From Ramazzottius varieornatus (Eukaryota; Animalia; Tardigrada): a DNA stretch of 64,000 nucleotides. A program made the position numbers and the translations under genes. Numbering within the stretch: position 1 is the first letter of the stretch; each line of letters starts with the position of its first letter. A model generated the notes under the pieces. The model saw only the letters and a list, made by a program, of their open reading frames with translations, was not told where the DNA came from and did no database searches. Shown here one piece after another: positions 1 through 64,000 of the stretch. Where the stretch lies: assembly GCA_001949185.1 (NCBI GenBank), contig BDGG01000009.1, positions 795,624 to 859,623 of the forward strand, written 5' to 3'.

Positions 1-1382
1 GAACTGGTTTGGCATGCCCGACCATATTAATGGGTCTCTCATGATGTTTCCTTCTTGATTGCTGAAGACGCACTTGTCATCCAGACCGAAAGCCAGACGT
101 CCATCAGCGAGTAAGGCAATCTTGGGGTCTTGGTTCCGATCAATCGAGAAGAGCTTGTAGAAATCGCCGTTCAACTATACAGATTAAAAAACTGCTTATC
201 CGTGCTAAGCTGAAATATCTTTGGACAAGTCGAAGTTTGGAACAGAAACAGACGTACTCCGCAAGATTGCCCCCACGCAGCGGCGCATGCTTTCCGTGTT
301 ATTGGCTGGGAGCGTGCGCCACGTGGTAAAACGATCTCGTAGAGTTTTTGATCAAGTGGCGCACACTCTAGCAAAAAACATTTGGAAAGTGCGCCAGTTG
401 GAGAAACAATCTTGTCGATTGTTCGTCGAGCTCCCAAATCATTCAGCATACTTTCATTCTTTGATATTCGCCAGCAACGTTGATGTATAGCGCTTCGTTG
501 GCCCAAACAACGCACTTTGGACTTTCAGGCACCGCCAACTTGATATTCTGTGAGAGTACATATAGGAAGTCAATTGCAATGGCGAGAGAGGGAAGTATGA
601 AGAGGACTTGCCGATGCTTCTTCGAACTTTCTTTCCCCGCCTTTCAAGTGAAAAACCTGTAAAATGTTTCTGCATGCAAACCAGATGTCTGTTCAACCTG
701 TGGGAGGAGGTCTTACCAGTAAACGTTGTCGTACGACGACGCACATGGCGACTTTCGTTTCGTTCATCTTCAGAGGATCTCGGATGATGGACAAGGCGAA
801 CAGAGTAGCTCCTCGCGTCTTGGATATGGAGTCCAAAACCGGAAAACTACCCGACTCCGTAGAGCTTAGATCGTGAATACTAATCACAGTGTCAGATAAA
901 CTGACTATGATTTGGAATTCTTTGATGACGGCCAACTAGAGAAACGAAAGAATTCAACTCGTACTGTATATGACATAAGGTTTGTAATCGCACCTGCGAG
1001 ATTGGCTTTCGCGAGAAGTTCTTGCTGGACTTGACCAACGATACTTCCGCCTCTTCCGTTCCATCTGAAAACATAAAGGATACATCATTTCATATGTAGC
1101 ACGCTTTAATACGACAGACGTTTCGGACGCTGACTGCAGTTTCTAGTTGTACCTTTGTTGAATGTGCCGCGAAACTCGACTCTGTACATCAGTAGATGGC
1201 CTTCCTTTGTACCAACGAATATGTTATCATCTAGAACGGAAATATGTCAACGTGACATAGGCACGTCAGTATTAAAAGCATATTTTGGAGATAAGGATTA
1301 GGGACATACCGCTTGTGGCCAGTGTCTCAATCGCCAGTGGCAGTTTAGGCAGCACGTTGACGAGGGAGTAGACGTCCAGCAT
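1..1382 (-). CDS. VPS39: VPS39/Vam6 HOPS subunit, N-terminal CNH domain (multi-exon, runs off window start)
   Basis: Spliced translation MLDVYSLVNVLPKLPLAIETLATS/DDNIFVGTKEGHLLMYRVE/...NFSRKPISQ/LAVIKEFQIIVSLSD...KTRGATLFAL resembles the Vps39 N-terminus (MHDAFEPVPILEKLPLQIDCLAAW..LLVGTKQGHLLLYRI); GT-AG introns. Confidence 0.88.
245..438. repeat. Fold-back element, 2 units, VPS39 intron
   Basis: Two GGCGCA-N25-TGCGCCA units; ends GTCGAGCTCCCA. Confidence 0.85.
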
Positions 1383-2318
1383 CTTGAAGCCAGTCCTGCC
1401 GTCCCCTCCTGGTATATTCAGCAGAATTCTGCAAGGTACATGCGCTGTCCGAGCAACTGAAACAAGGTTCTTCTGTCAGGCGGTCGCCACCGAAATCCTC
1501 CGAATATACCAGCAAAGGCAACCAAAATACGAATACAACATCCGACCGAAACCACAAAGGTCACCACCCTCCCCCAAGGGCCGGTTGGAATGATAAACCC
1601 GGGGTTTGGGTTTTTACGTCACTTCACGACACAGTAGGTAACGAGACACAGAGCTAATGGCGGCCAAAAACCTCTTCTGCTCATTTCTCCTATTTTCTTC
1701 GATCTCCATCCAAATCTCCATCTTCCAGACAATTTTAGATGACTGCTATTTGAACGACTGGATGGAGTGAGATGGGCAGTTCCGTTCGCCGTGCTGGGAC
1801 TTGAATCACGCCGAACTGGAGTGCGTCCCTGTGAAATACATGTCAACGGCTTGATTTGTCGAGCGTACCTGTTGAGCCTGTTCCATCAACTTCCACCTTT
1901 ATCCCGAGTTGAAGATTGCAGCCTTCAAAGCCGTGGCTAAGATCATGTCTGTTCGAGCACAACGTTCGGACTCCACATTCATCATAATATCTAGCCCTTC
2001 AAAGTCCAGGGCGCAGAGATACTCAGAGTATTCCAGTTCGGGTTTAACGAAACCTTCCAGCGCATCCAAACAGCCCATTTTCGATCAAGTAGTTCGAAAA
2101 AGAAGCAGAACGACTATCGCTACAGTTATGAAGATAGTTCCTTGTGAGTAAATACCTTGGAGTTTGTTGTAACCAGGAGTAACACTTTAAGCAGGCTGAT
2201 AACTTAGATAGATAGATGCAGGATCTGACCATGAAGCTATGTTATGTGTATAGTATGTAGGTAATGTCATGTCATGTCGCTGTTCTACCTACTGGTTGCA
2301 GCATGACATAACAATAAT

Positions 2319-3502
2319 ATGGCGGAAAGGCATTTGGATTTTGGAAATTTTAAACGAGGTAAGATTTTCTGAATCTGTTTGTTGTTTTGTAGCTTCGGCT
2401 CTCATCCGACGTGCGAAAGCTGCAAGGCCTGTAGCTGAACTAGAAAACGAGCTCATCGACACTGGTGGAGTTGAAGTGACGGTTTTGGAGATTCACCCCG
2501 AGAAAGAAAACTGTCAGTCATCACGTCTGGAAATGAGCTCGAGAAAGCAGATCGCCAAGCGCCGATCAGGACGGCTCCCACCTCCTACCGTGGATCAGCC
2601 TGTCGAAACGTCTTCTCGGTCTACCACTTCAGTGGAAAGTGTGGCTGGCTACATTCAAAAGAAGAAGATGGAGATCGAGCAGCTGAAAGCTATCCGCGAC
2701 GGCAGACTGAAAGATAAAGCGCGGCTCGTGCGAGACGTCAATATCGGCCAAAGTCAATACCAGGTACCACCTCGATACCATTCACCGAAATTCAAGATGG
2801 AAGAACATGACTGCAAATAACCATTCAGGCACGAATGCAGCAAATCCGAAACTTGGGCAAACAGACTCGACAAGGCGGTTCTTTCAAGTGGCGCACGCTT
2901 ACAGCTAATAACATGGTGACAGTGCGCCATTTGGAAAAACAATCAACTCGACAAGATCGCTTTTTCGGGTGGCGCACAATCTCAGCATAGACCACGAGGG
3001 ACCTGCGCCACTCGGGTAAACAGTTTTGTCGAGTTTATTTTCCGAGCTTCCATAGTTTCCTTGCGAATCATCGTGGAGTTTTCAGATCGTTTGCGGCATC
3101 CACGCGCACCACAAAGATGAATGGGCACAGGAGGACTCGGAAGGTTTACTAGTATGCAGACTGCGGAAGGTTCTGGAACTACAGAAGGAAGTTGGACGAC
3201 TTCGGGAGGACGTCGATCGTGGTTTGGACCGTCTGATCTCCGTCATCACTGAGCATCTGGACACAGAAGAGTGCTCGATCGCGGAGGACCTGCAGGAGAC
3301 GCCCTTGAAGATGGAGAACGAAGGGAGTACCGACCTGAAACAGTTCTTCCGGGATCTGGTCGGTCGGTATATGGCAGGCCAGTCCTTCCTGTATGCGGCC
3401 AAGTACCATCCGTCTTTAACTAACATGCTGGCTTGTATTGGGTTGATCTCATTCGACGAAAACAGTCCGGAGCGAATAGCGCTGGCATTTGAAAGATCTT
3501 AG
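2319..3502 (+). CDS. Coiled-coil protein of about 275 aa, possibly CENP-K-like; exons approx 2319-2358, 2393-2763, 3087-3502
   Basis: In-frame GT-AG splices join ORF 2269-2820 to ORF 3224-3502; helical middle; C-terminus YHPSLTNMLACIGLISFDENSPERIALAF recalls the CENP-K C-terminal motif. Gene existence likely, identity tentative. Confidence 0.55.
2853..3054. repeat. Fold-back element, 2 units, intron of the CENP-K-like gene
   Basis: GGCAAACAGACTCGACAAG..CAAGTGGCGCAC-N25-GTGCGCCA twice..CCGAGCTTCCATA. Confidence 0.88.
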
Positions 3503-4569: not shown

Positions 4570-5381
4570 TCTCCGAAGTGTCCTCTGGCATATTCTGCGG
4601 TTCCGAATTTTACAGCACAATCACAAAACTTTGTGAGGCTTCGTTTAATCTTTTCTTAATAATTTACGGAGGCACCGAACCACGCAAACCTTTACCATAC
4701 CAAATGGGACGTTGATGAATAAATTCACCCGGATCGTCATCTTAGGTGGCGCACAACTTCATTGCTATTGACTGACAGCGTGAGCCACTTTGCTGACGTT
4801 CCGAATACCGGAAAGATCGAAGCTAAAACTGGTACCGCATGTTTTTTTCTTTCCGGCACAGAAAATTAAGGCAAAGCGATATTACGCTGCGCGAGTTCAG
4901 CCGGGAACTGAGATTCGCGAGACCTGTCACTAATCTCTCAGTCGGATGAATCCAAGACTTTTTTCGCGTTTTCTAGCAATAGTTTTGGGAAGAGAAATGT
5001 CTTTTCCTCGTTTTAATGCTGGTCCAGGTCGAAAACGTGATGGATTTGCAGAAGAAATGAGAGCGGAAGTCAAGTGGCGCAATCTGGGAACGGCGCGTCG
5101 CTCGGATTACTTGGCGCGCCAGGTCCAATTCGCTGATTGGTCTGATTACGCTCCAATCCACTGAAATTTCATTTCGACCAAAGTGGTCAATAGTTCAATC
5201 AACTCAGCTTGCACAAAATTTGAAATTCTGTGCAGCGATATTAGGCCGAACATAAGTCGTGCATAAAAGCACAGCACAAAACCTATAGATATGCTGTGCA
5301 AGCCGAAAATATGACTTGCGAAACAGGTCTATTGTCAGTGCGACAGAAACAGGATAAAACCTCAACCTAAAAGAAAGTTTT

Positions 5382-6939
5382 TCAGCCTTCAACAAGTCCC
5401 TTTTCTTCCTGCGTAAATTCCGTGTCAAAATCTGGGAGTTTAGTTTTAATAAAATCCACTATTGTCTCTTTGTGCTTCAGCAGCCCGGAGAATTCACCGA
5501 GTTCCTCTTTCGAGATGTAGGGTTGTAGCATACGCAGAAGATGATGATGACATTCCGTCCAAGCCAGGTAGTCTGTATCTCCTTCAAACATGGCGATCCA
5601 TTCTCTCATTACCGAGAATGGCGTCTTGTCAAACCCCGCGAACATTGTGGGGTTCCGTAGAAGACCTCGAGCCGCCATGATGCCGTCCACTCCAGTCTCT
5701 GCCGCGATACGGTGACAGTCTGCTAGGTTGAAAGCGTCGCCATTCGCTACCACTGGTACTCGGACGGAGTCCTTGATGAGTTTGATGGTTTCATAGTCGA
5801 CCGGCTGATCTTTCAGGACTATCGCGTCAGGCTTCCTTCCGTGGACTGCTATCCACGATATACCGGTAGCTTCCACCTTCTGACACAAGTCCACTGTCCT
5901 CCTGAAAGAATACGAATTCAAAACTGATTTGAATCCTCGGCCCAAACATCAGACAAAACTGGTTTCCCAAAGTAGCGCAGATTTACAGTGTCATGGGCCA
6001 CAGCATGTGCCACTTGGGAAACGACCAATTCGAGTTGGTCCAAGTGGCGCAGCTTGAGCCGGTGATACTAGGAAAGGTGCGCCACTTGGGAAAGTCCTCG
6101 CGTGTATATAAGCAGCACTCGGCAAAAATGGACAGCGTAGGTTCTTTACCGCATATCGCCCCCTGCATCGAGGCGGATCTTTATAGACTTCGAATATTTC
6201 GGATCAGGAAGTCTGTTGTGGAGCTGCCTTATCATATCCTGAAGGAGTTCGGGGCTTTTCAGTAGACAACATCCGACTTTCCTCCGGAGAGCCCATCTGG
6301 AAGTATCTCTTGTTAGGACTTATACGAACAGACTAGCACTACAACTGCCCTTTTAATATTGTTAAAAGAAAGAGTACGTACTTCTGAGGACATCCACAGT
6401 TGAGATCAACTCCGTTACTATAACTATAAGACAACCGTATATAGCCGGACGAAGAACTCCACACGAGCTTCAATATAAGATCGATCACTTACGGGTAGAC
6501 TATCTCGGCAGCATCCGCGTACGCGACAGGGTCTCTGGTTCCGAACTGGACGATCATATTGCGGTCTTCCTCGTTCGTTTCCCATTCCGCTATTCGCTGT
6601 ATCCGATTGTCCCGGAAGTCCTCAGCGATGATCATAGGACTGTAGGCGATGTCGCATCCATACCGTCTCACCAGGTTGCGAAAGCGAACTCTAAAACCAG
6701 AGCGACATTGATCAGTCAGACGGATCACAAAATCATGCGTTCATGAGACAGCTTACTGCTATATGCACTCACCTACTATATTCCACCATAGGCGCACATA
6801 TCAGTACCGGTTTCTTTTCCGCGAAGATGTCCAGAAGATCAATATGCTCCGAGACAGGTGCGACAGTGGGTGCACCCTTTATGTTGACACTGAAGTATTG
6901 TCGGTTTTTCACCAAGTTCGCCGTCGAAGTCTTCACCAT
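5382..6939 (-). CDS. DUS4L: tRNA-dihydrouridine synthase 4-like (multi-exon)
   Basis: Motifs ICAPMVEYS, FRNLVRRYGCDIAYSPMI, IVQFG, GVDLNCGCPQ, SIKIR, IAVHGR, PVVANGD, GIMAARGLLRNPTMF. Confidence 0.92.
5935..6135. repeat. Fold-back element, 2 units, DUS4L intron
   Basis: CAAGTGGCGCAG..GTGCGCCACTTGG cores. Confidence 0.82.
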
Positions 6940-7524: not shown

Positions 7525-10500
7525 ATGGGTATAACAGGACTATGGCAAATCCTAAATTCCACCAGTCGACCCGTCACTCCGGAATCTCTGGAGAACCAGA
7601 TTCTAGCCGTGGACGTTAGCATATGGATGCACCAAGCCGTGAAAGGTGTCCGGGAACGTCGCGGTGCCATTCCCCGTACCGAAGATGCGCATCTACTGGT
7701 CATGTTCCACCGGATCTGTAAGCTGCTCCACTATCGCATCAAGCCCATCTTTGTCTTTGACGGAACTCCACCAGCCGTTAAACAGCGCCAGATGGAACGA
7801 CGTCGACGGATACGTAATACGGCCCAGGAGAAAGTACAGAAGCTGTCGGTGAAGCTGCTGGAGAATCTAGTCCAACAACAGGCCGTCGGAAACGCCATCG
7901 GAGTGAGGACGGGAAGAATCACGGCGAGTCAGAGTAGCCAGCTGAGCCAACCTTCAAGCCAGGTAGCTGTCACGTCGGGGGAATCATCTAGTCGGGATAT
8001 GTTTGCTCTTCCAGCACGCGTGCCAAAGGATGAAAATGATTCGGAAGACGAACGTGATGTAGGATCGAGCGGTGAATCGGATAACGAGATTATTTCGCAG
8101 GTACGAATTCAGTGCATAAAAGGTAAGTCGGCCACCCTCCAGTTTAAATAGTATAACGTGTATATTATCACGCAATTGGGGGTGGCCGACTTAAACATCT
8201 TGGCTTGGTGCTCCGTAGCGGTGATATCAGTGATCTTGAATGTCAAGATGTCCATTTTGTAGCCTTCGACGTCTAGTCAAATGAAAGTCAACTACGACAA
8301 AGTCGACATCAACTCTGCTGACTTCAAGTCCATGCCTCCCGAAATTCGGCATGAGATTCTGACAGAACTGCAGCAAGCTCGACGGAAGCCATCGTGGAAG
8401 CATATCGACCAACTGCCCGAAGACTCGGAACAGTTCTCTTCCTTCCAGATCAAACGGCTCATGAAACGCAGCGCTGTTCAGCAGTCGCTGAGAGACACAG
8501 CTCGTGAGATGAACTCCAGACGGACAGGAGCGATCTGCGCACAAGTCGGGAACAAGCTAAAAGAAACGGATACGTTCAACGTCGACGCAAGAAAAATCGC
8601 CTCCACTGAAAACTCCCACTACCTGTTGCTGACACGCAGGAACAGCAAGACGACATTAGGGTCTTCCGAAGAAAACACAAATGATAGTACAGACACAGCA
8701 GAGGAGGCCATCGTAAGCAGTAAACCAGTCAAGAAGTTGCCGCCGGAAGTGTTCGTCGTTTCTTCCGACGAAGACGAGAACGACCTGCAGATTCTGGATT
8801 CGGTGATACGTGCCTCGCTGGAAACCAAACCAGTTGCGCCTGTCGTGTTCGAACTTGCTCCTCCGGAAGACATTTCTGATGAGGCAGATGTCAGCGTGTC
8901 AGACTCCTCGTTTCACATTCCGCTGAGTTTGGTTAGTCAGCAGTTCGTACCTCAAAGATCGGCGCATGTTAACCGGGCTCTGCAGCTAAGCGGCCATCCT
9001 CCTTCAAAGTCCAAGGAGAAGAAACAAGGTGTCTTAGTTGACGAGGCTGTGACGGCGAAGAAACCTTTGTCCAAGAAGGTCGCAGAGATCACCATACTGG
9101 ATTCTCCAGAAAAAGCAGGTATGTAGTTTAAGTGGCGCACGTTTGCATTGTTATTCACCTGAACCGCACTTTACTTGGAAAACCATCTTGTCGAGTCGAG
9201 GTTGAGTTTCCAAGTGGCGCACAGTGCCAGTGTTACTGGCTGGAGGCATGCGCCACTTAAGATAACGATCTTGTGCGCTTCGTTTGCCCGCCTCTCATCT
9301 TTTTTTCTCTTTCCTGCAGATCGAGCAGCGGAAGAAAGCAAGGCTGAGAAGTCGGTCGACTCGGTTGTCTTGACAGTGGACGAAGAAAAGCCCGAAGCTA
9401 AGGAAGTTAGAGTGGCAACTCCGACCAAGACGTCTTTTCCTCCATCGATCCAGCTGCCTCTCCGTACTCCTGTCTCCATTGCTTTCGATCATGAATCGTC
9501 GTGGGGTGATTTTTCCTCACCGCGTCTGGCTGGTTCTCGCGAAAGCTCCGACTCGGAAGATGACTTCGAAGTCGTTGCAGACGAAGAAGTGTAAGTTTGT
9601 CCATAGTTGACTCATTTGCAAGCATTGACTAACGAAGTTGTCCTCGTAGGTTATCGGTCAGCCCCATCCGTCGCTCGCCTTTGCCTGCTCAGAGTTCTCA
9701 AGCAGAGGTCCCTTCTACGTCGCAAGCCAGCGTTGAGTCTATGCCGGAAGCCATGCAAGCCATTGTGGCCGCTGACCACGCCGACTTCCACAACGAGGCT
9801 CTCGACGAGTCGTTTCTCGAGATCGATCTGGAAGCCGTCGAAGCGGCCACCCTAGACCAAGAGCAAAACACCCAACCCGAACTGTCTGTGCAGGAACTGC
9901 AGAATTTGCAGACGCACCTCGAGACCCAAGCGAGAAGTCTGTATGGCGAGCAGAAGAAAGAAGAACGGATGGCCAACTCGGTTTCCGATCAGCTGCGAAT
10001 CGAGTGTCAGGTAAGAATCATTTCGTTTTCTTACCGGGCATTTTGAATAGTAGTGTTATCCTTTGAATTGTTTCAGGAGCTTTTGAGGCTGTTTGGTATT
10101 CCGTATATCAACAGTCCCTCCGAAGCCGAAGCGCAGTGTGCCTGCATGGATCGAACCAAGCAAACTCACGGTACGATCACGGACGATAGCGATGTCTGGG
10201 CCTTCGGTGCCCGGAAAGTTTACAAAAACTTCTTCAACAGTAAAAAGTACATCGAGTGCTTCGATATCGAAAATATCCAGTCGCAAGTTGGTAAGTTATC
10301 TTGACACTCTCACATAAGATGTGACCTTGGCAAACAAACGGAACAAGATCGTTTCTCCAAGTCGCGCACCCATCCTGAAAACGTGCACCACTTGAAAGAG
10401 CAGTCAAACTCGACAAGATTGTCATCTCAAATGGCCCGCGGTTCCAGCTAATAACACTGATCACGTGCGCCACTTGAAAAGGGATCAAAGTCGACAAGGT

Positions 10501-11430
10501 TGATCTTCCAAGTGGCGTACGTTTCCAGCTTATAATAATGAAATCGTGCGCCACTTCATGGGGTATGATAGAACGCTGTTTTTCTTCTTTGCAGCGATGA
10601 CCAAAGAAAAGATCATTGCGTTTGCACTCTTGACCGGTAGCGACTACACCGAAGGCATCGAAGGGGTTGGTGGCATCAGGGCCTTGGAGATCCTGGCCGA
10701 GTTCGGAGGCGGTGGTGTCGAGACTCTGCAAGAGTTCAAGAAGTGGTGGGACAAGACACAGCGTCGTCGAAGAAAAGGTGACAAACGCCCTGAGAACAAG
10801 CTGCGCGCTCAGCTGGCCGAACTCTCTATCCCCGACATCTTCCCAGACGACGTCGTCGTACAAGCTTACCTCGACCCAGAAGTGGACAACTCCACTGAAA
10901 CGTTCACATGGGACGTCCCGGCCTTAGACCTTCTTCGCGAGTACACCCGGAAGAAGTTCGGGTTCAAACAACAGCAAGCAGACGAGGTCTTGTTACCCAT
11001 TATCAAACGAATGAACGCAAAGCAGGAGACACAGACAAGGCTTGAAAGTTATTTCACAGTGCAGTTGAAGAGACCAAAGGTAGTGATGCGGAGTAAACGA
11101 CTGGGTAATGCCATCGATAAGATCAAAGGTGTGGAGGAAGTCAAGCAGGACGATGAAGGAGGGTTAGATGGAGCTTCTCAGGGGCCGAAGGAGAAGAAGA
11201 AAGGCAAAGCTCCTGCTAAGAAAGCTTCGAAGAATACGATCGAGGAAGAAGGAACGACTAAAGCCAAACGCGCCAAGCCGAAAGCGCCGGCAAAGAGAAC
11301 ACGAACAGACACGGTATCGTCGATGGACTCACAACCCAGTAGTGCAGTCAGACCACGAAAGCGGGCACCGAACAAGGCAAAGACGAAAGAAGACTCTAGC
11401 GAGACAAACGGGTCTTCGCAGTATTTCTGA
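7525..11430 (+). CDS. ERCC5: XPG structure-specific endonuclease (multi-exon)
   Basis: N-domain [36 protein letters not shown]; spacer region with FSSFQIKRL; I-domain [29 protein letters not shown]; [15 protein letters not shown]; PIP-like QTRLESYF; basic tail. Confidence 0.96.
9128..9298. repeat. Fold-back element, 2 units, ERCC5 intron
   Basis: CCAAGTGGCGCAC-N25-ATGCGCCACTTAAG. Confidence 0.88.
10324..10560. repeat. Fold-back element, 3 units, ERCC5 intron
   Basis: Three cores starting approx 10358, 10428 and 10508. Confidence 0.88.
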
Positions 11431-14900: not shown

Positions 14901-15541
14901 CGAACTGGAATGGAATCGACTTTGGGAAAGTGCCACTTCGCTTCGGGCCGCACTGGAGTGAGACGACTGGCTGTAGTCGTACCCATGTTCAGTCAGCCTG
15001 GAGTAATGATCCAGACTGTAACGAGACATGTTGGGCATGGGAGGGTTGGGATCTCCATGGATATTATAGGGAAGACTGGAAGATCAGAAACATGATTTAT
15101 CCAACACTCATAACAAAACATCACATATTTGGTAGTTCGGTAAACAAATTCGACGAGATAGTGTTTCTCCATTGGCGCACTTTTCGAGTGTTATTGGCTG
15201 AAACCGTTGCGCCAGTTTGGAGATCGATCTTGTCAAGTTGTGTGTTGTTTCAAGTGGCGCACGTTTTTAGTATTACTGGCTGGAAGGATGCGCCACTTGG
15301 GGCACAGTTTGGTCGAGTTTCAAATTTAAGAAGTCGCTAGCGTTGAGATAAATAAACGTACCCGTTTGCGTAGGTATAGCCTGTTTTCGGCTTTTCATCC
15401 CTGAAACAAAAAACACGAGGTTGAGATGACATGATGTGGTAAAATGGAAGACGGTAAGGTTACAACGTACGACAGAATCTCGTCCAGAGATTCCAGCCCG
15501 GAAACAGGCGCTGATGACTTTACGCTTTTCCCCATCATCAT
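11970..15541 (-). CDS. SUN1: SUN-domain inner nuclear membrane protein (SUN1/2-like, multi-exon)
   Basis: N-terminal TGYTYA and PNMSRYSL (as in SUN1), TM segment WWWIPLLLLLFLFPLL, coiled coil, SUN domain DHALESAG..PRLAIQP..PGQCWAFKG..LEHLPK..SAPKQF..SNHGNPEYTCLYRFRVHG. Confidence 0.92.
13348..13590. repeat. Fold-back element, SUN1 intron
   Basis: GGGAGCAC..TGGCGCA cores with the shared spacer in both orientations. Confidence 0.8.
14157..14280. repeat. Fold-back element, 1 unit, SUN1 intron
   Basis: AACTCGGTAAACAAGCTCGACCAG..AAGTGGCGCAC-N25-GTGCGCCACTTGG..TTTGGCGAGCTCC. Confidence 0.9.
15130..15320. repeat. Fold-back element, 2 units, SUN1 intron
   Basis: Two cores with a TGTTATTGGCTG-type spacer. 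Confidence 0.85.
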
Positions 15542-17659: not shown

Positions 17660-17852
17660 CGTCGACAAATGAATTCACCCAGCTCGTTTTCTCAGATGGC
17701 GTACGTCATCAGTGTCACTGGCTGGAGATGTGCGCCACTCAAGATAACAACGGCTGTTATTTCAAGTGGCGCACGTTTTCATTTTTGTTGGCTGAAAGCG
17801 TGCGCCACTTGCGGAAAGACTCTGAGCGAAATCATCTGCTGACGTCCCATAT
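17660..17852. repeat. Fold-back element, 2 units, intergenic
   Basis: Two cores; ends GACGTCCCATAT. Confidence 0.85.
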
Positions 17853-20458: not shown

Positions 20459-20459
20459 G

Positions 20460-21735: not shown

Positions 21736-21865
21736 ATATGGGATGTCGGCAAATGGAATCATCCAATCGTTTTCTCAAGCGGCGCACGCTTCCAGCCAAT
21801 ATCACTGAAAACGTGCGTCGCTTGGGAAAGGGATTTGGTCGAGCTTATTTGCCGAGCTCCCATAT
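21736..21865. mobile_element. Complete single-unit fold-back (MITE-like) element between convergent SNRPD3 and GPCR 3' ends
   Basis: ATATGGGATGTCGGCAAAT...CAAGCGGCGCAC-GCTTCCAGCCAATATCACTGAAAAC-GTGCGTCGCTTG...ATTTGCCGAGCTCCCATAT, 130 bp, inverted ends. Confidence 0.88.
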
Positions 21866-22002
21866 GCTGCGCTGTCATCCGTGATATTTATAAGAGGTGC
21901 GACGATATTGTAGAGTAGTTCCAAGAGCATCGATAGAAGCTTTAACCACAAAGGTACTCGAAAAACCTATCATTTGTCGAAGTGCGAAAGGTGGTCGTGG
22001 AG

Positions 22003-33790: not shown

Positions 33791-33794
33791 GTCG

Positions 33795-51500: not shown

Positions 51501-54228
51501 TTTTTCTTCCAAATTTTACAGTTCACGAAAACGCTAAACATTGAGTTTGAGTGCGAAGGCTCTAAGACGACCGACACTGATGTGCCGTCCCACTGTGATA
51601 TGGGAGCTCGGCAAACAAACTCGATAAGATGGTTATTCTGGTTGGCGGACGCTTCCAGTCGGTAACACGGGGACTGTGCGCCACTTAGGAAAACAACCGA
51701 ACTCGACAAGATTGGTTTTCGCAAGTGGCGCTCGTTTTTAGTTTTATTGACTGGTAGCGTGCGTCACTCAAGATAGCACTGTTGAACGTGTAGTTCGCAG
51801 TTGTCCCATAATTGTGTTTTTCGAGTAATATGGGTATCTTTCGTAGAGTGTTCTGAGGGCCTATTGCAAAGGTTTCCTCCAGCTGGACCTTCGTCGAAGG
51901 ACAGCGGAAGCTCTTACGGTGGGGCTGCCGTGGTTTGGCAAACGCTTGCCCCTCATTGTGGACGTCCAGCTTTACTTTGTGGAGCCAGACGAAGAGCAGG
52001 AAAGTCCGTGCCTTCGTAAGGTTGCCTCTTCGATGGGCACTGGCGCGACCATCGTCCACCCGCGTCCACCGGCTTGCCGCAAAACGGATCCTGGGTTCAA
52101 TCAACGCCTTGTCACTTGCACTGTGACGGCTGAAAGTGTAAAAGAAAAAGTCCACAACGAAAAGTAAGAAGATGTTACTTGAGTTTTTAACTTTTGCTCC
52201 CAGCTTGTGAACTCTTTCTCCCTGTAGGCATTTGACCACCGCGATTCGAGACCCGGAAAATTTTTCCGCTGTCGTTCTGGACATAACGTAGGGCTGGGCG
52301 CCTGACTTTATCATATCAGGTTTTCTAACTCTGTTATGGGTATGCTATGCGTTGTAGGTTTGGACGAACCTGGCCAGAGGGGGAAGTGGAGAAGGACCTA
52401 GTGAATCTGCTGGCAGTTTGTCAGCAAACTTATGACGAGATGCACAAGGCCGAAGATCCTGAAGAACCTATCGCTAAACTGAGTATGCCTCGCGAATATT
52501 TCTGCCTTGCTTTGGGCGGAAGGCAAACCGTGCGAGTTCGGTACCCTAGATGGCGCACGCTTCCGGCCGGTGGCAATGGAAGCGCGCGTTACTTGAGACA
52601 AAGATACAGGTTGATTCTAATTGACTGAATGGATTTTGAGGTGCTGCAAAAAACCTTCCACTAATCTCTCCGCTTCTAAGCTTCACCTACGTATACTTTA
52701 AGCTGTTGAAATCATTCCCTAAAAAGTCCGTTGCGCCTGTACTCTTTGAAAAAACACGCACAAGAAAATTTCGACTACGAGGAAAACGAGCGCTGGTTTC
52801 AGAATCTTAAGTTGGCTCACTTCCGTCCGATCTCTCGCTACAAGCAGCTTTTTTAAAACATTTCGCTGGTGTAGTCCTGTTTGGATCACGTTCGTAAATA
52901 GTTATAAAATTGTTTCTTTTGATGTTTCGATTTTTGGTGAAAACTGAGTCCAATAAACGAGTTGTTAAGCAAAACATCCAAGCTATATTCTGTATTATTT
53001 TCGATTCCAGATTTTGCATAGAACAACTTGTGATCGAATCCTTCCTAAATATTAGCTCAAACAATTATGCGTCATAGAAAAATGATTTAGAATAAATTGA
53101 TGGTCTTGCACGTCAAGCAGAAATAATTCGCCCAAAAACGTCGTTTTTCCACCGGTAAAATGGGTGGTTTTCCGTGGATTGTACTAATCAAATGACCAAC
53201 CCACGCTCAAGAAATTTATACAACATATCAAGTTCTAAACGAGATCTATCGAACGAGCAGTAGCTTGACGATACCTGACCAGAAATAGCTGTACAACAAA
53301 TTTGTAAATTCCATTCAGTCAATTAGAATCAACCTATACCGTATTGTACGGTTCGTTTGCCGGCCTCCCATTCACTCTTGCGAATATTCGGCAAAAATTT
53401 TCAGTTATTCGAGAAATCTTTGTCGGTTTTCTTTTTACGCCGTTTTTTACTTTTGTGTCTTTCAGTTATCGAGAAGGAAATGCCGCATCTCCAGCACAGA
53501 TTTATATTCGGTCGGCTTCTGCTGACAGAGTGCCGGCAAATTTGTTCGCAGGTTCCTGCAACGATTTTAGCGGAAGTTCGGGCCATCTTCAAACCCACCA
53601 TGATCCACCTGAAGGTTCTCCGAGCCATATTGACCAGTCTGTACCCGGTGGAATCGGAAAAGGGTGACTTCGAAGACTGGAACAAGTGCAAGGACTGCGT
53701 GCGGCTGGAACTGCTGCGCCTGATATCAGAGTATGACCCGACATCGTTGCTGACCGAAACGACATACCAAACTATCTACAATGCACTCCACGGTATATAC
53801 TTCCGTTTGACTAACTACAGTTTGTGGGAGGGCGGCAAACGGAACGTGCAAGCTTGTTACCTCAAGTGGCGCACTTTTCGTTGTTTTTGGATAGAAACGT
53901 GCGCCACTTGGAAATAACGATCTTGTATGCTTGTTAGCTGTCCGGCAGATGTAGTATTTATAGTACTTCATATATATAGTTCATATTGTGGAGTTCTACA
54001 TAAAAATTTTTACATCTCGCTTCTGCTGTTCCAGATGTCGCTCTGATGAGCGAGACGGAAGCAACTAACGCCCAGCCAGTGTTCAAGTTCTTCCATCGCT
54101 GGTGTGTCGTATGCTTACATCTAATGACTTCCGCCGATGATGCTCGGAAAGGGACGTTTGCTAATGACTTCCAAGTCGTGTTCAAGCCATTAGTTAAAAA
54201 CGCACCTGAGACACATAGAAATCTGTAG
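45522..54228 (+). CDS. EFCAB5: EF-hand calcium-binding domain protein 5-like (large multi-exon gene)
   Basis: LIPLLYLGLEEVVRQ..FDPLELLGVYLLRHNP docking-like motif, EF-hand-like segments, GAF-like GRLLGVLNLDT, C-terminal EVRAIFKP..KVLRAIL..DWNKCK..YDPT..FHRWCVVCL. Confidence 0.72.
46033..46232. repeat. Fold-back element, 2 units, EFCAB5 intron
   Basis: CAAGCGGCGCAC..GTGCGCCACTTG; CAAGTGGCGCAC..GCGCGCTACTTG. Confidence 0.87.
46695..46883. repeat. Fold-back element, 2 units, EFCAB5 intron
   Basis: Near-consensus left arm GGGAGCTCGGCAAACAAACTCGACAAATTGTTTCTCCAAGTGGCGCAC-N25-GTGCGCCACTTGGAAAAACAATCTTG. Confidence 0.92.
51598..51811. repeat. Fold-back element, 2 units with both termini, EFCAB5 intron
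   Basis: ATATGGGAGCTCGGCAAACAAACTCG ... GTTGTCCCATAA. Confidence 0.9.
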
Positions 54229-54591
54229 AGCACTGGAAACTCGGGAATCGAAATCAACCAGAACGTTTTCCCAAGTCGTGCATGCTCCCGGCTACCGGCA
54301 CTGGAAGGGTGCGCCACTCGAGAAAACAATTAGGTCGAGTTTGCTTGCCGTGCTGCCGAACAGATATCCATGGAGACACGTACTGTACTGGTACACTCAC
54401 ATTTCGCGCAGTAAAATATTTTCGGACTACAGTTTCGGTACGCGACTGAGAAAGCCATACCCGGCCGAACCAAGGTAACGAGCAGGCGAAAACGTAATTT
54501 ACGTAAGTGAGCTATCAGAGCCGAATAAAACTCCAGCATTAATTTGTTACTTCTTTAAATTTCATTCAGATGAACTCTTCAGCGAGAAAAT

Positions 54592-56872
54592 ATGTCTTCC
54601 TCGCCACATTTGCAGCAGTCTTTTCTTGCGCATCTGCGTGAGAAGGTCGAGAGCGTCAGATCAGCCGTCTTCCGTACTTATCATGAATACCCGTATCACT
54701 GTATAGCTTACAGTTTATTCGTTCTGCGATACCTGGTTCCTTACGTTTACGACCTGTCGGTGATTGTTGCCCATTCGGTTGCATTTTCCGATCAGCCTTT
54801 GGTCCTGTACAGCATCTTGGCGGTCCTGCTTGCCGCCATTGCACGCGCTCGTCATAGAATCAAAGTTTTGTTTTGCCATCGTTCAGAGACCATATCACAT
54901 ATGGCACCACTTGAACGGAAGCGGAAGTCGTTTGAGCCTTTGCAAGTAACGAACACTTCGAACCAGGAAGTAGTCCAGCCGTTTGGATGCCAGGGTGTGA
55001 ACGAGCTCCAATGTGTCAGAAAGCAAAAGCTTTCCCCACCAGTCAAGCGTTCAGAGAGATCCTCCACCGTCGAGAAACAGTACGTCCTTCCAGGTACGTA
55101 TAAGATTCTCTGTACTTGAGCATGTTACTACAATAGGTAGCATTTATGGCAGCTCGGCAAACGAACTCCACAAGATGGTTTTCCCAAGCGGCGCACTTTT
55201 CCCAGCCAGGAACACTGAAACCGTGCCTCAATTGGTGAACAAGATTGACCAGATTTGTCTCACAAGTGGCGCACTTTCCCGGTGTTATTGGCTTGATGCG
55301 TGCGCCACTTGGAAAAGCGATCGCGTCGAGCTGGCTTGCCGAGCTCTCATATGGTCTTTTCACTCTTTTTGTGTCAGTTGGACTCTGATGGAATTTTTTT
55401 GACCTCGAAGACAAGTTATTCCCTTTGCCTCCGCCCCCACCGGTTCCTCCGAAGTCGACCAGTCTTCCAACGGCAAACACAAAGGATGATATAACGCCAA
55501 TCGTTACCGAGCCGAACTTGGGCGGGTATTTAAGTCGTGAGCTTGGTAAAGAGAACGAACCCGCTGTAGAGAACTGGAGTGTATTTGACGTCTCGTCAGG
55601 CCTCGCGACTGAACTGTTCCCAAAAAGAGGTAGGACTAGTTGTTTACTTGACCTGTTACTGTTCTGATGTACCTTCCGAATAATTGTTTGCATGCTTGTA
55701 GAAAGCGATATTTGTCTGATCGAGGGAGAGAAGGAAAACTCGCTGACTCAGTTCCCTCATCTGGTGCTCTCCTCTCCTAAATCAGCCTCCCAGCCTTACC
55801 GAACAAAAGCCTTCCAAGAGTGGGTAACCTTCGAGAACTCCAGGGAGAAACTGCCTGCCCACCTAGCAGGCGACCAGCTTGCATCCGACGAAGATTTTAC
55901 CCTGAGCGAGCAGTCATACAGTGTATCGACGGACTGTGAAACCGACGAAAAAGTCACGTACATTCACTTTCCGTCACCGGTACCCGGTTAGTTCTTAACG
56001 GGATACTTTTGTATTAAACAAGGTGCACAAAATTTGTTTTTTTCTGGCAACTCCTGCTCGCAGATTTTCCCTCTCCCAAAGAAAGGCGGATAAAAATCGA
56101 GCTTCCCAAAGATATTCCGTCCGAGACCAGTATAACAACTGAAATTACCTACATGAGTAAGCTGTCCAGTGCCCGCTGTGAAGGTACGAATGGGAAGCCC
56201 GGCAAACGTAACGTACGAGCTTCTCGCCTCAAGTGATGCGCGCTCCAGGCTTGTTACAATGAAAATGTGCGCCAGTTGAGATTGTTGTCTTAGGTGACGC
56301 ACGTTCTCAACTTATCGCAATAGATACATGCGCCACTCGAGTTAACCGTCTTGCGCGTTCCGTTTGCCGGCCTAGAAGTATGTTTCTTGCACTGTAAGAT
56401 TATATCCGGACTACGTTTACTTGGAAATGTTGCTTATGTGCCCATTAGAACCCGATTTCCCTCTGTCCTGCACGGAAGCTCCCGGATTATGTCAGTCATG
56501 GATAGGCTGTTTCAGCGTTCGCAAAGGTCTCCGGTGGAGAAAGTGCAACGTGGTTTTTGAAGACGATTATTTGGAAATCAGTGCGGCGTCGCTGAAGGTT
56601 GGTTATGTCATGAGTTTTTCTTTCGGAAGGCAAGTTTTGATTTTGTATGTATTTTGCAGGGTCATGAAAGAAGTCTGTTGCGCTACCCAGTGTCGAATTT
56701 CTCTGTCCGGACGAAGAATAACTTAAAATGCGGTCCCGGGCACGGCAGTATTTTAATACTATCTTCTCCTAATTTGCCGGAAATATCTCTCAGGGTGTTT
56801 GACAATAGCATCAAATGTGAGTTCCTCTGCTTTGTGGAAGACTTGATGCCACGACGCCGCATAAACTCCTGA
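54592..56872 (+). CDS. Uncharacterised protein: N-terminal hydrophobic segments, Pro-rich linker, C-terminal PH-like domain
   Basis: Exon-like ORFs with GT-AG boundaries; PPPPPVPPK; WIGCFSVRKGLRWRKCNVVFEDDYLEI..PEISLRV suggests a PH fold. Confidence 0.5.
55145..55352. repeat. Fold-back element, 2 units, intron of the PH-like gene
   Basis: TATGGCAGCTCGGCAAAC ... TTGCCGAGCTCTCATAT. Confidence 0.9.
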
Positions 56873-57194: not shown

Positions 57195-57788
57195 ATGGGA
57201 CCTCTAGGAAGAACCTTCACGATGGCGTTCATGTTTGTCATGTCCGTTCTGCTGTGTAGCGTTGCGCTCGCTCCATCTTCGACCATAAGGAGGAAGAGCG
57301 GCTTCGTCACCGAAACGGTTCACTGTCTACGAAGCTGAACGACGGTAAGCATCGAGACTCCAATAGGACTTCGGAGAATGATTCCTCAAATCGCTGCTTC
57401 CGGTGGCGCACATTTGTAGTTGTTATTGGCTGGGAGACTGCGCCACTTGGGAACACGATCTGCGTGAACTCATTTACCGACGCCCCAGATGAACTAGCTG
57501 ACACACAATAATTTCTTCCTTCTCAGCTTGTGTTACCGGTGAAAGAGTCCGAAGCGATGACTCGGGTTTTCTCTGGTGCACTTGTCGGCATGGACGGAAG
57601 GTTTGCGCAAAGATACAATGCAGCAAGATTGAAGTTCCGAATCCCTGCAAGCTCATTAGAGCGAGAGGTCACTGTTGTCCCAAAGTATTATGCGGTAAGC
57701 CGTGGACGGTACGATCATTCGTACGTATATTCTATCAGGATCTCTCAGCCCAAGCGACACGTTTTCTTTCCAGAAACCAGAAACCTGA
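57195..57788 (+). CDS. Small secreted VWC-domain protein, apparently frameshifted in exon 1 (possible pseudogene or sequence error)
   Basis: Exon approx 57527-57694 reads CVTGERV..WCTCRHGRKVCAKIQC..NPCKLIRARGHCCPKVLC; signal peptide MAFMFVMSVLLCSVALA lies upstream in a different frame. Confidence 0.6.
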
Positions 57789-60703
57789 CGACGTCTGTAT
57801 TCTACAGTTTGCCGCGGATTGTGCTGCCATCTAACATGTTTGAAACGCACACGGATCCCTAGCTCCTAACGGACTTCCGGGAATTCATTATATCCCGAAC
57901 GAACAAGAAAATTGAGTAATATTCTTACACCTACGCGGTATGAAATTTTTCGTTTTTAGAGTGTAAAGAAAAGTTCTGGGCTGGTTGGCAAGCGAAACGT
58001 ACAATACCTTCAACTCCAGAGCCGCACTTTCCCATTGTTATGACTGGAAGCGCGCGCCACTTGGAAAACGATCTTTCGTGTACGTAATGTTAAGGGAGGA
58101 GTCCGGAAACGACCGGGTTCTCGTGCGGAACCCAAGACGGAAATCGGGTACGTTAGTTCCCAGACACTATCTTCACGCCTCGAAGTAACACCCCGTATAG
58201 GCGTGCATTACATCACGCAAGTTCCCCGGAGAGGCTTCCTGGTGGCAGAGTGTCCGCTTGCGGTTCTCCGTAGATGACAACCCTGCGGGTGCGATCGTTT
58301 CTCTTGTTTTCATGGTCACGCCATGCAGTAAGCAGATCCTCGTTCCTGTCAATTTAGTTCTCTAGGGAGTATTCCAACCGTGCCACCCGATACCAGTCTA
58401 ATTATTTCCGGGCCTCATTTCCGGTATGCATATATTGTAAACACAAACTCTCCCGATACTGCAATCCGGTAATTACCTCGCTATATATTGCAAAAGACAC
58501 ACAATACAGAAAAAAATGTGTATCCCGTTAAAACACTGTATCCGTATCTTTTGTAACTTCTAACCGTGCGTGCTCCTGTTTGGTAACTCATGCTGGTTGC
58601 TCTGCGCTGGCCGTTTTTCATCAAGGAACATCATGAAGGTACGAGTGGGTGTCGGCGGCCCAATACCAACACAATGGACGCTTAGTTGAAATGTTCAGGA
58701 ATCGAGTTGAAGTTTTGGGACCTCAAGGGCGAATTTGAACTACTGATGCAGTCAGGTGTAACAGACATGGAGGAAAACGATGCTCGAGCTCACTCGACCG
58801 TCTGACCAGTGGTCAAGCGGCTACGTCAGAAAAATCTGACGAGGCTGGAAATGTTGAGTGAAAATATTATGACGTCACGGTGACATCATACAGCGTGAAA
58901 ATGCGGCTGCGTCTTTCCGGACGCAAAACACCTCAGATCGGGGTATTCCAGCTGGCAATCACCCTCAGAATTCTCGGGAAAATCATCCCAAAAGCGCGAA
59001 AATTTTTCCTAGACTTTGAACCACGCCGAGGTGCGGCAACTGCGGCACCTGATGTTCCTGAATATTGTCATCAACTTGATGTCACAAAAGGACAATTTGG
59101 AAGCAAAATCCATTGTGTTGGTACTTTAAAGTGCCAATCATGCGGGACAGGTTTGGATCCGGGTGCGTGTAAAAAGGCCGCGCGAATGGTGGGTGAAATA
59201 TCAAGTCAACGTGTGTGTCGATCAGCCGATCGCTACGACATGACACATAATAGCCAACACGGCGCGTACCGGGGGGATTCTTTACGCGGACCCGGACCAA
59301 TCTTGTCCCACTTCATTGGCACGTTAAAGTAGTGGGCCGCTGAAGCTTAAGTATCGTACTGTTGCGTCTGAACCTAGTACAAACTGCACCGAACCGTGCT
59401 TAGGCACTAGATTGCTTGCAGGCCACAGAGCGCCACAAACTCTTTCATGATGTTTTCCATACGTCGCCCAATACAGAGCAGTCTTTCTCCAGTATGAATT
59501 TTTCAATTCTAATTGCAATTACGATTAATCGGACTACTTCGGGCGGCAGCCATTTCAATCATCCGAGACTCAGCTCAGCTGAATTAGGAATTACAATTAA
59601 TCGGAATTCAACTCGCATCAGCAATTGAAATTATTTCAATTGCTGCGGTTCATGTTTTAGATCTGAATACTCCCGAAATATCGGGTTTCAAAGCAGTTAA
59701 GCCTATCGTTTCATAAGTGTGGAATGGATATTGGATGTTTAGCTCAAACCATGTTGTACAATAATTAAGGCGTCAAACACGGATGCGCTGATGGAAGCAG
59801 GTATTATAATGCTTCCTGAGGCCCCGTACGTACGTCATCATACACGAGAAAAATCCCTTAAGAGGTTGGTAGGGAAAAATACCGGGACCGGGGTTTACCT
59901 TCGCGCGTATTTATGCACCGCGCGTAATTCGCAAAACAAAACTGTAAACCGTAGTGCCACAACCCCATACGCATAGATGTTCGCCGAATCAAGCGCCAGA
60001 GATACCCAGAAACTCCGATACTTGGTATACCCACGTGTGTTTTACCGCGCTGCAGGGCGCAAATTCAATAATTTGAATAGCCACATTGTTTATTTTAATT
60101 ACCAATCATAATTCTTCCGCTTTCAGAATTCTACTACAGTTCTGATTAATAGTGAAATTGCCCAGCTTGGGATTCCCGATTTCAATTGTCATATTGGAAT
60201 TCAAAAACAGTCGTTTTCGGCCATTTTCAATTATGAATTGTAATGATCGGAGCAACACTGATACAGAGTTAGTGAACAACATCAGTATCGAAGGACCGGG
60301 AAAACACTCAGAGTCCACGAACCAGGTTGATACAGGAACCGGGAGAACGAACCGTGTGCCATGCTTACTGTACCGCCCACCATGGGTGATCAGTTTGCCT
60401 TGTTTAGGTAAGGCCTAGGCCCTAGGGACAAACACCTCCACGCAGCCGTTTCCACGACGTACGTACGTACAGTACATACTTAGGTATGCATGTCATGACG
60501 TCAGCGTCATCGCTTCCCCGTCCGGCTTGCTTCAGTTGACACTGCGCTGCGGCGCGCAGCCGGAGTGAGGGGAAATGGAAACGCCAGCGGTCCATTCTCC
60601 TTTCATTCCTTTTGTGTTGCGGTGATGAGATTCTGCTCTATGATCGTCTTATGAGGGAGAAAAGGAGCCCGACACTGCCCTGAGCTACGGTTTGATCTGC
60701 GGT

Positions 60704-63700
60704 ATGGTCCCAATGGAGCCTCGCTTCGGACAAGAAGAAGGCGACGGAAACGACGTATTTGGTTATGAAGATTGCCCCAGCGACTCGCGCATATCTTCCA
60801 GTTATTCCCTGCTATCATCCCCGACGCATCCAAATGTTTCGCCATCCCAGCTGATCCATGACCGTCATAAACCAGACCTTTTACAACGCGTGACAAGGGA
60901 AGCCAGCGATGCTAATTCGCCAAACGAAGTGGAGCAGAACGACGACTTGATTTCGTTAATTCGACAACTTGAATCGGAACGGTATGTGCCTCCAGTTCCC
61001 TTTCCGCGTAACTTCGTTACTGTTTTTTGCTCTCGATGGTATTCGGAAAACGCATCTTTGAGGGAGGTGTTCATGGAAGAGGGTTAAAACCATGGCTGGG
61101 ATATCTTTTCCGGTTGATTCTTTAATGATGACTAATTGACGATGGGGAAAGAAAACGATGCCTCTTTCCTCGCAAGCAACGTTATGTATCGGTTGCACGG
61201 TCCTTCCATGCCGGATCTTGCATGTTGATGGAGGTGACATAGCCTGGCCAAATGGTTTCTATTGATTTGTGCCGGAAGAGATAAGAGGAGCGCTAAAAAT
61301 TCATTATTGTCAAGTGGATTTATCCTGGCAGCTAGGGACCTTTTGACTTGCAAACTCATCGATCTAGCTTCCGTTCCATCGATCCCAGCCACTTATATTT
61401 CCCCTTCTCCCATCTTCCACACAGTTGACTAATCGAACCTAATGGAGTGAAGAAAATTACTAGCGCTTTTTGCACGTTATAAATAATGTATCCATTTCGT
61501 TGATTATAAAAAACCCAAAAGTTTAATAATGTTGTAGTGGTCTCATCCACAGCATACAGCAAGTTTTCTACGCTTGAAGGTGGAGATTGCGAAATATCAG
61601 AAACAAATCTCAGTAGGCGGGCTTTATCAGAATCTATCCCTAAGCTTGATTGGCCGTTTTCTTAATTAGAATTAATCCATTAGTTGTTCTTTTGCACTGG
61701 TGCGAGATTACGATAGTGGACATTAGGACCGCCCACTGTGTTGTGATCCAATATGAATGCATTAATTTTGAGTTACCCAAATTAGTTCTTTCCGGTGCTT
61801 GTGGGTGAATAGCCCTGAAGTGTCGCACTTATCCTGGATACCTCCACCTGAACTCGTTATTGATTTTTAATTTGAGCAATCTTGATCTGTGTCAGAGCCA
61901 ATTTTAGCCTGGGCTTGTTCTCATTTGCAGGTATGATTTGCTGCTGAGCGAGAGGGCCTACCAAAACAGAAGCAAGACCGACACTGGGGAAAACAGTCCA
62001 ACAAGTCTCCTTTCTCCAAGGTCCATAACGATCGCTGGATCGCGCGGTGCGTCTGGAGGAGGAGGAGGGGAAACCTCGAGTACAGCAAAGAATAAAAGAA
62101 GTGGAAAGTCTTCAGCGCGTCGCCTCAATCGAATCTGTCAAATTGACAGAGAAGTAAAACAGCTTTCGCACTTGTTGGAGATGCAAGAGGTTCGTCGAGT
62201 GATTTATGCTTTTTACAATGCTCGCTCTTGCTTGCTGCATTGGTCTTTGAACTTGGTATCTCACACAATCGAATTTGGTGTTTTTATAGCGTGAGAGGAA
62301 TAGAGCGATCATGGCGAAGATAACTTCGGGAACAACGACGACGGCAACCCCTTCGCAGCTCCCTGCTCAGAAATCCCACCCCGCTCATCACGATCTCGCA
62401 TTTCACAGCGCTCTTGATGTCCGCTCAGCGAACCAAGCTCAAAAAGTGTCCATTGGCCGACCAATGCTGCTTCTCCACAGACAGGTTTGTACAACCGGAA
62501 ATGAGTTTGCAGAACTTGGAAATCGTTTTTCCTGGTGGCGCACGCTTTCGGCTGATTACACCCGTAATGTGCGCCACCTGGGAAAACAACAGACCTTGAC
62601 CAGATTGTTTTCCAAGTGCGCACGACGTCAGCTAACTGCACCGTAAAAGTGCGCCAGTTTGAAAAGCAATTTTGTTGGGAAGTTTTTTTGCCGAATCAGA
62701 TCCTCAAATGGATTCTGGAAATATGTTTTGAACTGTGGATTAAGACTAGTGTGCTATTTCTTGTAGGACCAACTGCTGGCGACGTTGTCGTCGTTGTTCG
62801 AGGTGGACAAGCATCGAATGGTGCAGATCCTGTTGGATCACTGTTCGTCGCGCGAGCAGTGTTTCCTGCTATACCAGCAGAACATTTTCCCAGTTGTGAT
62901 ACGTCTAATCCACGATCCGTCGTGTGGAATTAGCGAAAGCCCGCGTGAGGTTCGTATGAAAGCGGGTCAAGTGCTCGATTTACTGGTGAACTGCCAAACG
63001 GAAGACAAACGCGGACGGCGTGAAAGAGCGGTGCTTGACTGGCTGCAAAAGATTCGCACCTATAACGATTTATTGATCAACTCTAACCACGATGTTTGCT
63101 CCACAGGTAAACACACTCGAAAGAGTATTACACTACAGCATACTGAGAATCTTGAAGAATCTGAATGCAGTTTTGTGGAAAAAAATCGAATAATTAACCG
63201 GTGAATTTTCAGTTTCGTAGTGAACGAAATTCGTAACTAATGAAGTGTGGTTAGATGGGTTCGTCAAAATTTAGAAAATCGAAAAATATGGTAAAACTTT
63301 AGAAACGACTTTTCCGGCAAATTTTTATTTTTGTGCTGTATTTTTCAGTACATTGGGAAACGGCAAAGATGGAGCTTTACAATGCCCTGCTGAGCTTGCG
63401 CAAGTTCTCATCGGGTGACGAGTATCGCCAGTGCATCTGCTTCCTGGGTGGCCTTCCGACAGTAGCCGAGCTCTTACAGTGCGATTTCCAGAAGTTTGGT
63501 GACAGTCCCGACACGGATCATTCGGAGATGCGGGTGTGTGCCTGCATGATCCTGACCAACCTGACGTTTGGTGATGGCGTCAACAAGGCTCTGCTCTGTT
63601 CCTCCCCGTCTTTTCTGCAATGTCTTACTAGTCTCCTTCGTGCCTCTAGCGAAGAACTGCGCTGGAATGTCGCAGCCGTGATACGCAACATCAGCTGGCG

Positions 63701-64000
63701 AGCTGACGTGGCCAGCAAGCACGCCTTACGCGAAGCCAAAGTACGTATGGATTTATGGACGCTCGGCAAACAAACTCGTCTAGAACGCTTTTCTGAGTGA
63801 CGCACTCTTTCATCTGATAACACAAACAACATGCGCCACTTCAACAAACGCTACCCGATTGGTTCCCTAAGTGGCGCATGTTATCTGTAATTTTGGCTGA
63901 AAGCTGCGCTACTCTGAAAGCTACTTTTGCCGAGCCCATAAATTATTTAGAGAAAATTTAAGACTTGAATTGAGTCGTTCTACCATGTCGAAATGTAAAT
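60704..64000 (+). CDS. APC: Adenomatous polyposis coli, N-terminal part with armadillo repeats (runs off window end)
   Basis: RRLNRICQIDRE; DKRGRRERAVLDWLQKIRTY; LGGLPTVAELLQ; MILTNLTFGDGVNKALLCS; VAAVIRNISWRADVASKHALRE. Confidence 0.95.
62509..62695. repeat. Fold-back element, 2 units, APC intron
   Basis: GGTGGCGCAC..GTGCGCCACC plus a second degenerate unit. Confidence 0.82.
63752..63940. repeat. Fold-back element, 2 units, APC intron
   Basis: TATGGACGCTCGGCAAACAAACTCG ... TTTGCCGAGCCCATA. Confidence 0.88.

Follow-up and report, generated by a model that had tools for sequence, protein, structure and literature searches.

The 64,000-nucleotide stretch analysed here (hereafter the window) corresponds to positions 795,624–859,623 of the forward strand of contig 9 (BDGG01000009.1) of the tardigrade Ramazzottius varieornatus, whose genome assembly spans 55.84 Mb in 200 contigs. 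Its genes are ordinary ones encoded on both strands, with Pfam matches from single exons to XPG, MTHFR, and a USP7-like protein. Alongside them, the window holds 81 units, in 49 clusters and amounting to 12.1% of bases by nhmmer, of one family of fold-back elements, almost certainly a dead, ~124-bp palindromic and non-autonomous DNA transposon, i.e. a miniature inverted-repeat transposable element (MITE). Within these units, two short inverted half-sites (the “core”) wear at about one-third of the rate seen in the surrounding arms and spacer, and this slow wear is not due to ascertainment, misalignment, or any resolvable subfamily structure.

The family model was built by iterated nhmmer search from a full-length unit (32486..32609), and its consensus is a 124-bp palindrome with two reverse-complementary halves, in agreement with the rough consensus of an earlier note made by eye from the letters of this stretch. 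That note had described a dense fold-back family and listed 47 cluster starts, 44 of which lie within ~12 nt of an nhmmer cluster start; the other three (47860, 49033, and 57395) fall 24–130 nt before theirs, and two clusters had to be added (12474 and 13509). Exact matches to GTGGCGCAC number 58 in the window against 0.21 expected, and exact 12-N-12 palindromes are found in 6 units against 0 expected. When up to one mismatch is allowed in each half-site, inverted pairs number 49, with a spacer of 25 nt in 38 pairs, 24 nt in seven, 26 nt in three, and 23 nt in one, so that the reported preponderance of 25-nt spacers stands. In a comparison sample of 200 kb, drawn blindly from five other contigs as twenty 10-kb pieces, we found 53 units (0.265 per kb, 2.5% of bases), which scales to ~14,800 units genome-wide, and exact core pairs at N25 spacing occur 1265 times across the genome versus 0 for a reversed control. 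The 134 units read in all represent ~0.9% of the family. Density is very uneven: the window, at 1.27 units per kb, exceeds ~4.8-fold the random sample, whose 10-kb pieces hold between 0 and 13 units, with none at all in 8 of the 20. This patchiness may reflect intron-rich genes or the chromosome region.

Each unit consists of an outer end beginning TGGGAGCTCGGC, an arm, the half-site AAGTGGCGCAC, a 25-nt spacer, the inverted half-site GTGCGCCACTT, and the mirror arm. The spacer, too, forms a small palindrome (GYTTCCAG-TGTTATTGG-CTGGAARC) whose orientation merely follows that of the unit, so that the apparent “fixed spacing” is the middle of a single long fold-back. The half-sites and the 25 nt between them were inherited as the central part of the element, and are not a geometry kept afterwards. 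A cluster comprises one to three hairpin units arranged head to tail between a single pair of ends (one unit in 20 of the window clusters, two in 26, and three in 3). Loop orientation is the same in 14 and opposite in 3 pairs of adjacent units, which indicates tandem units rather than nested insertions, and adjacent units are as unlike as random pairs (0.437 vs 0.444), which makes the arrays as old as the family. The linker between tandem units, ~38 nt long, is another small palindrome (inner-arm stem GGAAAACGATC/GATCGTTTTCC, loop of ~12 nt; seen at 2930–2968, 10404–10510, and other junctions), and occurs in two mirror forms, so that the arrays alternate two kinds of hairpin.

No open reading frame fits the 124-bp consensus, the window has no Rfam match, and no description of this family was found in the literature searched. 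A second, distinct palindrome family of like geometry was also looked for and has no copy in the window. The flanks fit a Tc1/mariner-type insertion, if weakly: of the 12 paired ends, 5 have identical 2-nt flanks, with TA on both sides, where chance would give 1.55, and age blurs the target-site signal. TA is also the commonest 2-nt flank (13 of 63, a weak lean), and A occupies position −3 in 73% of ends. A transposase-bearing partner with the same termini, which the earlier note had proposed looking for, was not found among the 20 best DDE_3/mariner (Tc1/mariner) loci, all of which carry other inverted repeats, in a search that was not exhaustive. One Tc1-like element with its own inverted repeats (locus L147, 679–2350) is flanked by MITE copies at 218–403 and 3202–3368, which we take as neighbours rather than as its ends. 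Core pairs also matched at least 120 metagenomic stretches, which we rejected as chance palindromes: the matches listed are all GC-rich (median 66%) and none has the arms, a result that covers those matches only and is no proof of the family’s absence there.

To control for ascertainment, copies were picked by one outer arm alone (n = 90 half-elements; shuffled DNA gives 0 arm hits at the 10-bit cut-off), and the unused columns were then read. In these arm-chosen copies, identity per base is 0.89 in the far half-site (transitions 0.077, transversions 0.030) and 0.70 in the far inner arm (transitions 0.155, transversions 0.145), while spacer columns range from 0.36 to 0.82, with segment means of 0.51–0.66. 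Restricting the comparison to gap-free far halves (42 copies) gives a divergence of 0.100 for the half-site versus 0.292 for the arm, a ratio of 2.9 (95% confidence interval 2.2–4.1) that falls to 2.3 without the six hottest arm columns. The uneven conservation first noticed by eye thus persists once motif-seeded bias is removed; calling the half-sites “near-invariant” went too far, as 83 of ~268 are exact 9-mers and arm-chosen half-sites carry ~1.2–1.3 mismatches per 10 nt. The core forms a sharp-edged block of uniform divergence (0.05–0.17 per column), and a single arm column (column 106, 0.05) lies below ~0.14. The transition:transversion ratio is 2.6 in the core and ~1 in the arms, and the core CpG is kept at 0.91–0.96 per base, whereas arm CpGs are among the most decayed columns (0.39–0.87). 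Core divergence is 0.10–0.11 whether copies in introns are compared with those elsewhere, the window with random loci, or single with multi-unit copies. When half-elements are instead chosen by the core (n = 149), 40% retain a recognisable outer end and 55% a recognisable inner arm. Subfamily structure was also considered as an explanation, and the index of association, column linkage, and cross-validated clustering account for little.

From this unevenness, the earlier note had argued for a bipartite protein-binding site at fixed geometry or a conserved stem, and more broadly for a domesticated cis-element. The bipartite site is not supported: the two half-sites of one unit wear independently of each other (rho 0.11, Fisher p 0.63), the number of mismatches in a half-site follows a nearly binomial distribution, and cores are equally kept when the spacer is not 25 nt (2.44 vs 2.10 mismatches per 20 nt, p 0.33). 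The spacer keeps its 25 nt in 79% of arm-chosen units and equal-length arm blocks keep their length in 58–68%, so that spacer constancy does exceed background, but only modestly. The hairpin is not maintained either, with arm pairing at the level of independent decay: complementary double changes in mirrored columns number 92 versus 73.8 expected under such decay, and 2 versus ~5 expected in the nine core column pairs. Core changes display no bias along the transcribed strand (61 vs 72), loop orientation is 28:21, and folding of eight full-length copies gives z scores from −6.6 to +0.75. As for a domesticated element, copies within introns and copies elsewhere are equally conserved, the motif is no commoner than chance outside the family (2 occurrences against 1.5 expected), and no better-kept functional subset of copies was seen across the genomic contexts tested, all of which argue against it. 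A variant of the idea, in which a protein reads the site one half at a time, is compatible with these tests. A likeness to CTCF cores was examined and set aside: 9 of 11 letters match their 3′ half, but the match breaks at a key G and does not extend to any of the 5′ half, which leaves a lead only.

Most elements sit in introns that were once 60–80 nt long and that they lengthened. RNA-like contigs were compared over 6 kb (45001–51000), intron calls elsewhere being heuristic, and 3 element-spanning joints were recovered among the 8 element clusters of that stretch, all of them GT..AG introns on the plus strand: 45978..46316 (339 nt, 2 units), 49764..49934 (171 nt, 1 unit), and 50569..50801 (233 nt, 2 units). 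The non-element part is exactly 70 nt in both of the latter two, the RNA-supported introns of the low mode described below, and element-free introns of the same stretch, whose joints are likewise found in RNA-like contigs, measure 60–86 nt (48401..48486, 86 nt; 48564..48623, 60 nt; 50117..50182, 66 nt; all plus strand). A search combining splice sites, open frames, and codon use, which recovers all three RNA-supported introns exactly, gives a confident solution for 48 of 84 clusters. Across these, intron length minus element length has a low mode of 61–70 nt, splice sites lie 9–128 nt outside the element, and the element ends have no splice signals. Because this remainder equals the ordinary intron size, the elements must have landed in existing short introns rather than created them. 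A 343-codon open frame (36648–37676, plus strand) crosses the element-bearing predicted MTHFR intron (36888–37221), and gene-callers could thus take element sequence for coding. Some RNA-like contigs, with a depth of up to ~300, match only element cores in 45001–51000 and then diverge into unlike sequence, which implies that copies elsewhere lie in abundant transcripts, perhaps as retained introns or in untranslated regions.

Why, then, does the core wear slowly? We lean, tentatively, towards the core being the element’s own cis-requirement for copying, with the diversity of the copies having arisen before insertion. The 10–11-bp core would be needed in cis for copying, most simply as the recognition site of the mobilising protein, and new copies would have arisen only from copies with intact cores. 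Arms and spacer would then have drifted along many separate source lines, the core being reset at each copying, and after activity stopped all columns would have decayed alike, by ~10%. The premise that a neutral MITE should erode evenly, on which the domesticated-element idea was built, ignores this kind of selection for mobility among source copies. We favour a copying requirement because the mid-arm variants share the core, the core is a uniform and sharp-edged block, and arm polymorphisms are mirrored, and because divergence is independent of context, half-sites are independent and near-binomial, and the motif is at chance outside the family. Three mid-arm variants, CAAACTCGACAAGAT (~64 arms), CGAAACGTACAAGAT (~12), and GAATTCACCCAGATC (~13), differ at several of 15 positions and have the same core; the cores of the two rarer ones are slightly more decayed (2.1 and 1.8 mismatches per 11 nt vs 1.3), and these two may be older. 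Some arm columns have a single alternative base at 30–40%, mirrored in both arms, which looks like polymorphism among sources rather than decay in place, and variable arm columns are mildly linked (45 pairs at p < 0.05 vs 23 expected).

Several observations weigh against a copying requirement. A transposase should need the outer ends, and these are poorly kept, at the 40% given above; the 20 Tc1/mariner loci yielded no partner. Nearest-neighbour distance and pairwise-distance variance equal those of a column-shuffle null, as in a star-like genealogy, and cross-validated clustering lowers held-out arm divergence from 0.349 to ~0.335 only. Steady copying is rejected: 90% of the runs simulated under it put the nearest-neighbour z below −2, against −0.49 in the real copies. 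No relatives of four private 25-nt spacers were found within 3 mismatches in the whole genome, where the consensus spacer has 363 such matches, 2 of them exact. Late copying by very many lines is disfavoured by these blank spacers only weakly, the chance of four blank probes in simulation being 0.28–0.46 with late copying versus 0.58 for a pure star. In BLAST searches covering the best 40 candidates at most per query, three copies have best neighbours in the genome at 77–79% identity, where a star simulation predicts 73–77%. Core divergence does not rise along arm divergence, a slope test made uninformative by the similar, old age of all units.

It is unlikely, though by no means far-fetched, that the constraint acts in place, each AAGTGGCGCAC being still read singly by a sequence-specific DNA-binding protein, of host or transposase origin, with weak purifying selection or binding-linked protection slowing decay in thousands of copies. 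A precedent exists in Caenorhabditis, where the THAP factor HIM-17 binds motif pairs borne by MITEs (PMC9757741). The contrast between core and arms persists under arm-only ascertainment and gap-free alignment, the star-like genealogy without detectable kin makes most divergence look post-insertion, the element ends decay like the remaining arms, and both the retained core CpG next to strongly decayed arm CpGs and the transition:transversion ratios speak for this reading. Yet such use left no functional subset, with near-binomial mismatches and equal conservation in every context tested, outside the family the motif is not in use, and decay within the core is uniform rather than graded by position. 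Moreover, selection would need to act on ~30,000 sites in a parthenogenetic animal, and we know of no protein that binds the motif, the likeness to CTCF cores failing at a key G. The stronger version, in which ~30,000 AAGTGGCGCAC half-sites, scattered over introns in most genes by one old MITE wave, would be held by a single DNA-binding protein, for example a transposase-derived one resembling HIM-17, and would form an intronic network of binding sites across a tardigrade genome, we regard as doubtful.

Mutation bias without selection, whereby the core context would be mutated or repaired differently or the palindrome arms and spacer would mutate faster, appears improbable. It would account for an effect that is uniform over all copies and contexts, for the independence of the half-sites, and for arm column rates that vary several-fold and are mirrored between arms with little correlation within a copy. 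However, ten adjacent cold columns, sharp-edged and present twice in mirror image, are hard to obtain from context alone, with ~30% of arm columns equally cold, the CpG inside the core stays cold, and we know of no mechanism. The location of copies in introns, and the fold-back that some of them still form (z down to −6.6), could also be read as an RNA-level element whose hairpin folds long introns down to the short size preferred in splicing and whose GC-rich stem is kept for that purpose. This is very improbable given that arms pair as expected from independent decay, with almost no complementary double changes in the core pairs, that there is no wobble-tolerated excess on the transcribed strand and no bias in loop orientation, that copies not placed in introns are equally conserved, and that Rfam has no match in the window. 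It is hardly credible that the element was an introner that itself made these introns: a few of them are nearly all element, such as 9119–9319 with 31 nt of non-element sequence, but splice sites lie outside the element, its ends have no splice signals, and the low mode of the remainder is the ordinary intron size here.

The family shares with Stowaway-like MITEs a length of ~124 bp, the lack of coding sequence, a structure that is almost all inverted repeat, a high copy number, flanks leaning to TA in an A-TA-T context, and genic AT-rich sites. It differs in that none of the 20 loci proved to be a partner transposon sharing its ends, in that the centre rather than the ends is best kept, and in having 1–3 tandem hairpin units within one end pair. 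MIR and the CORE-SINEs are old repeats with a central segment better preserved than the flanks over very many copies, and they raise the same debate between a segment needed for copying and one used by the host; those are vertebrate retroposons, whereas here the block is 10 bp long and lies in a DNA-type palindrome. The CERP2 and CELE2 MITEs of Caenorhabditis, whose m1m2 motif pairs are bound by HIM-17, similarly form a MITE family that dispersed short motifs by the thousand, in pairs a set distance apart, and are the precedent for their being read by a transposase-related host factor, but their co-opted copies are promoters with binding and function established by experiment (PMC9757741). The tardigrade family, in contrast, is intronic, with independent motifs and no visible functional subset. 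Introners, which make an intron and supply or co-opt its splice sites (PMC9860276, PMC12130899), are likewise MITE-like elements within many introns of unrelated genes, but here an ordinary-sized intron is left once the element is removed. Bacterial REP/BIME palindromes are also dispersed, imperfect, and sometimes arrayed, with a conserved stem motif; they lie between the genes of bacteria, where RAYT transposases mobilise them, and neither homology nor a shared mechanism is claimed.

As it stands, the result is a repeat annotation, in which one MITE family accounts for ~2.5% of the bases in a compact animal genome, with 12% in the window, and which explains why many introns here are 150–400 nt long instead of 60–80 nt. 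If preservation of the core predates insertion, then the core marks the site recognised by an unknown transposase. Were it instead kept in place, thousands of intronic sites would be read by one protein, a rare case of a genome-wide cis-element derived from repeats.

All element positions in the window are nhmmer calls without assigned strand. Single units that are full-length lie at 14156..14277, at 21738..21862 (TA on both flanks, and by folding the best remaining fold-back, z −6.6), at the model seed given above, and at 54234..54357 (fold-back lost, z +0.75). Mid-arm variant A is found in the single unit at 4704..4792 and in the two-unit cluster at 39436..39632, and variant B in the single units at 38122..38234, 53825..53927, and 57983..58075 and in the two-unit cluster at 45033..45238; further mid-arm variant sites are the cluster starting at 46039 and, outside the window, locus L018. 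The other single units are at 13359..13443, 16759..16865, 22877..22996, 34149..34272, 36008..36093 (predicted intron 35979–36126), 40099..40203, 47426..47550 (predicted intron 47416–47601), 49811..49911 (RNA-supported intron), 52517..52623, and 57364..57487, together with the two absent from the earlier list, at 12474..12532 (partial) and 13509..13584.

Two-unit clusters are located at 247..436, 2851..3053 (both ends present), 5935..6096, 9128..9297 (filling predicted intron 9119–9319), 15130..15320, 17660..17850, 18683..18878, 25195..25394, 26286..26462, 27581..27760, 28804..28987, 30501..30679 (adjoining the USP7-like exon identified with Pfam), 36930..37117 (in the predicted MTHFR intron that is open in frame), 43355..43548, 46039..46229 and 50617..50779 (both in RNA-supported introns), 46698..46876, 47990..48130, 49057..49217, 51600..51808, 55146..55350 (TA on both flanks), 56193..56373, 62520..62694, and 63756..63934. 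The three-unit clusters are at 10320..10556 (predicted intron 10291–10594), 24198..24459, and 29680..29949.

The best representative protein for the USP7-like exon, P0001 (217 aa, 85% identical), could come from a related tardigrade. Loci L154, L155, L157, and L160 (contig 9:1587705–1590941 and others) contain mariner-type transposase frames of 345–437 codons without a stop, and their inverted repeats begin TATCAGGTGATAAGG. These may belong to a young or still-active family, unrelated to the MITE ends.

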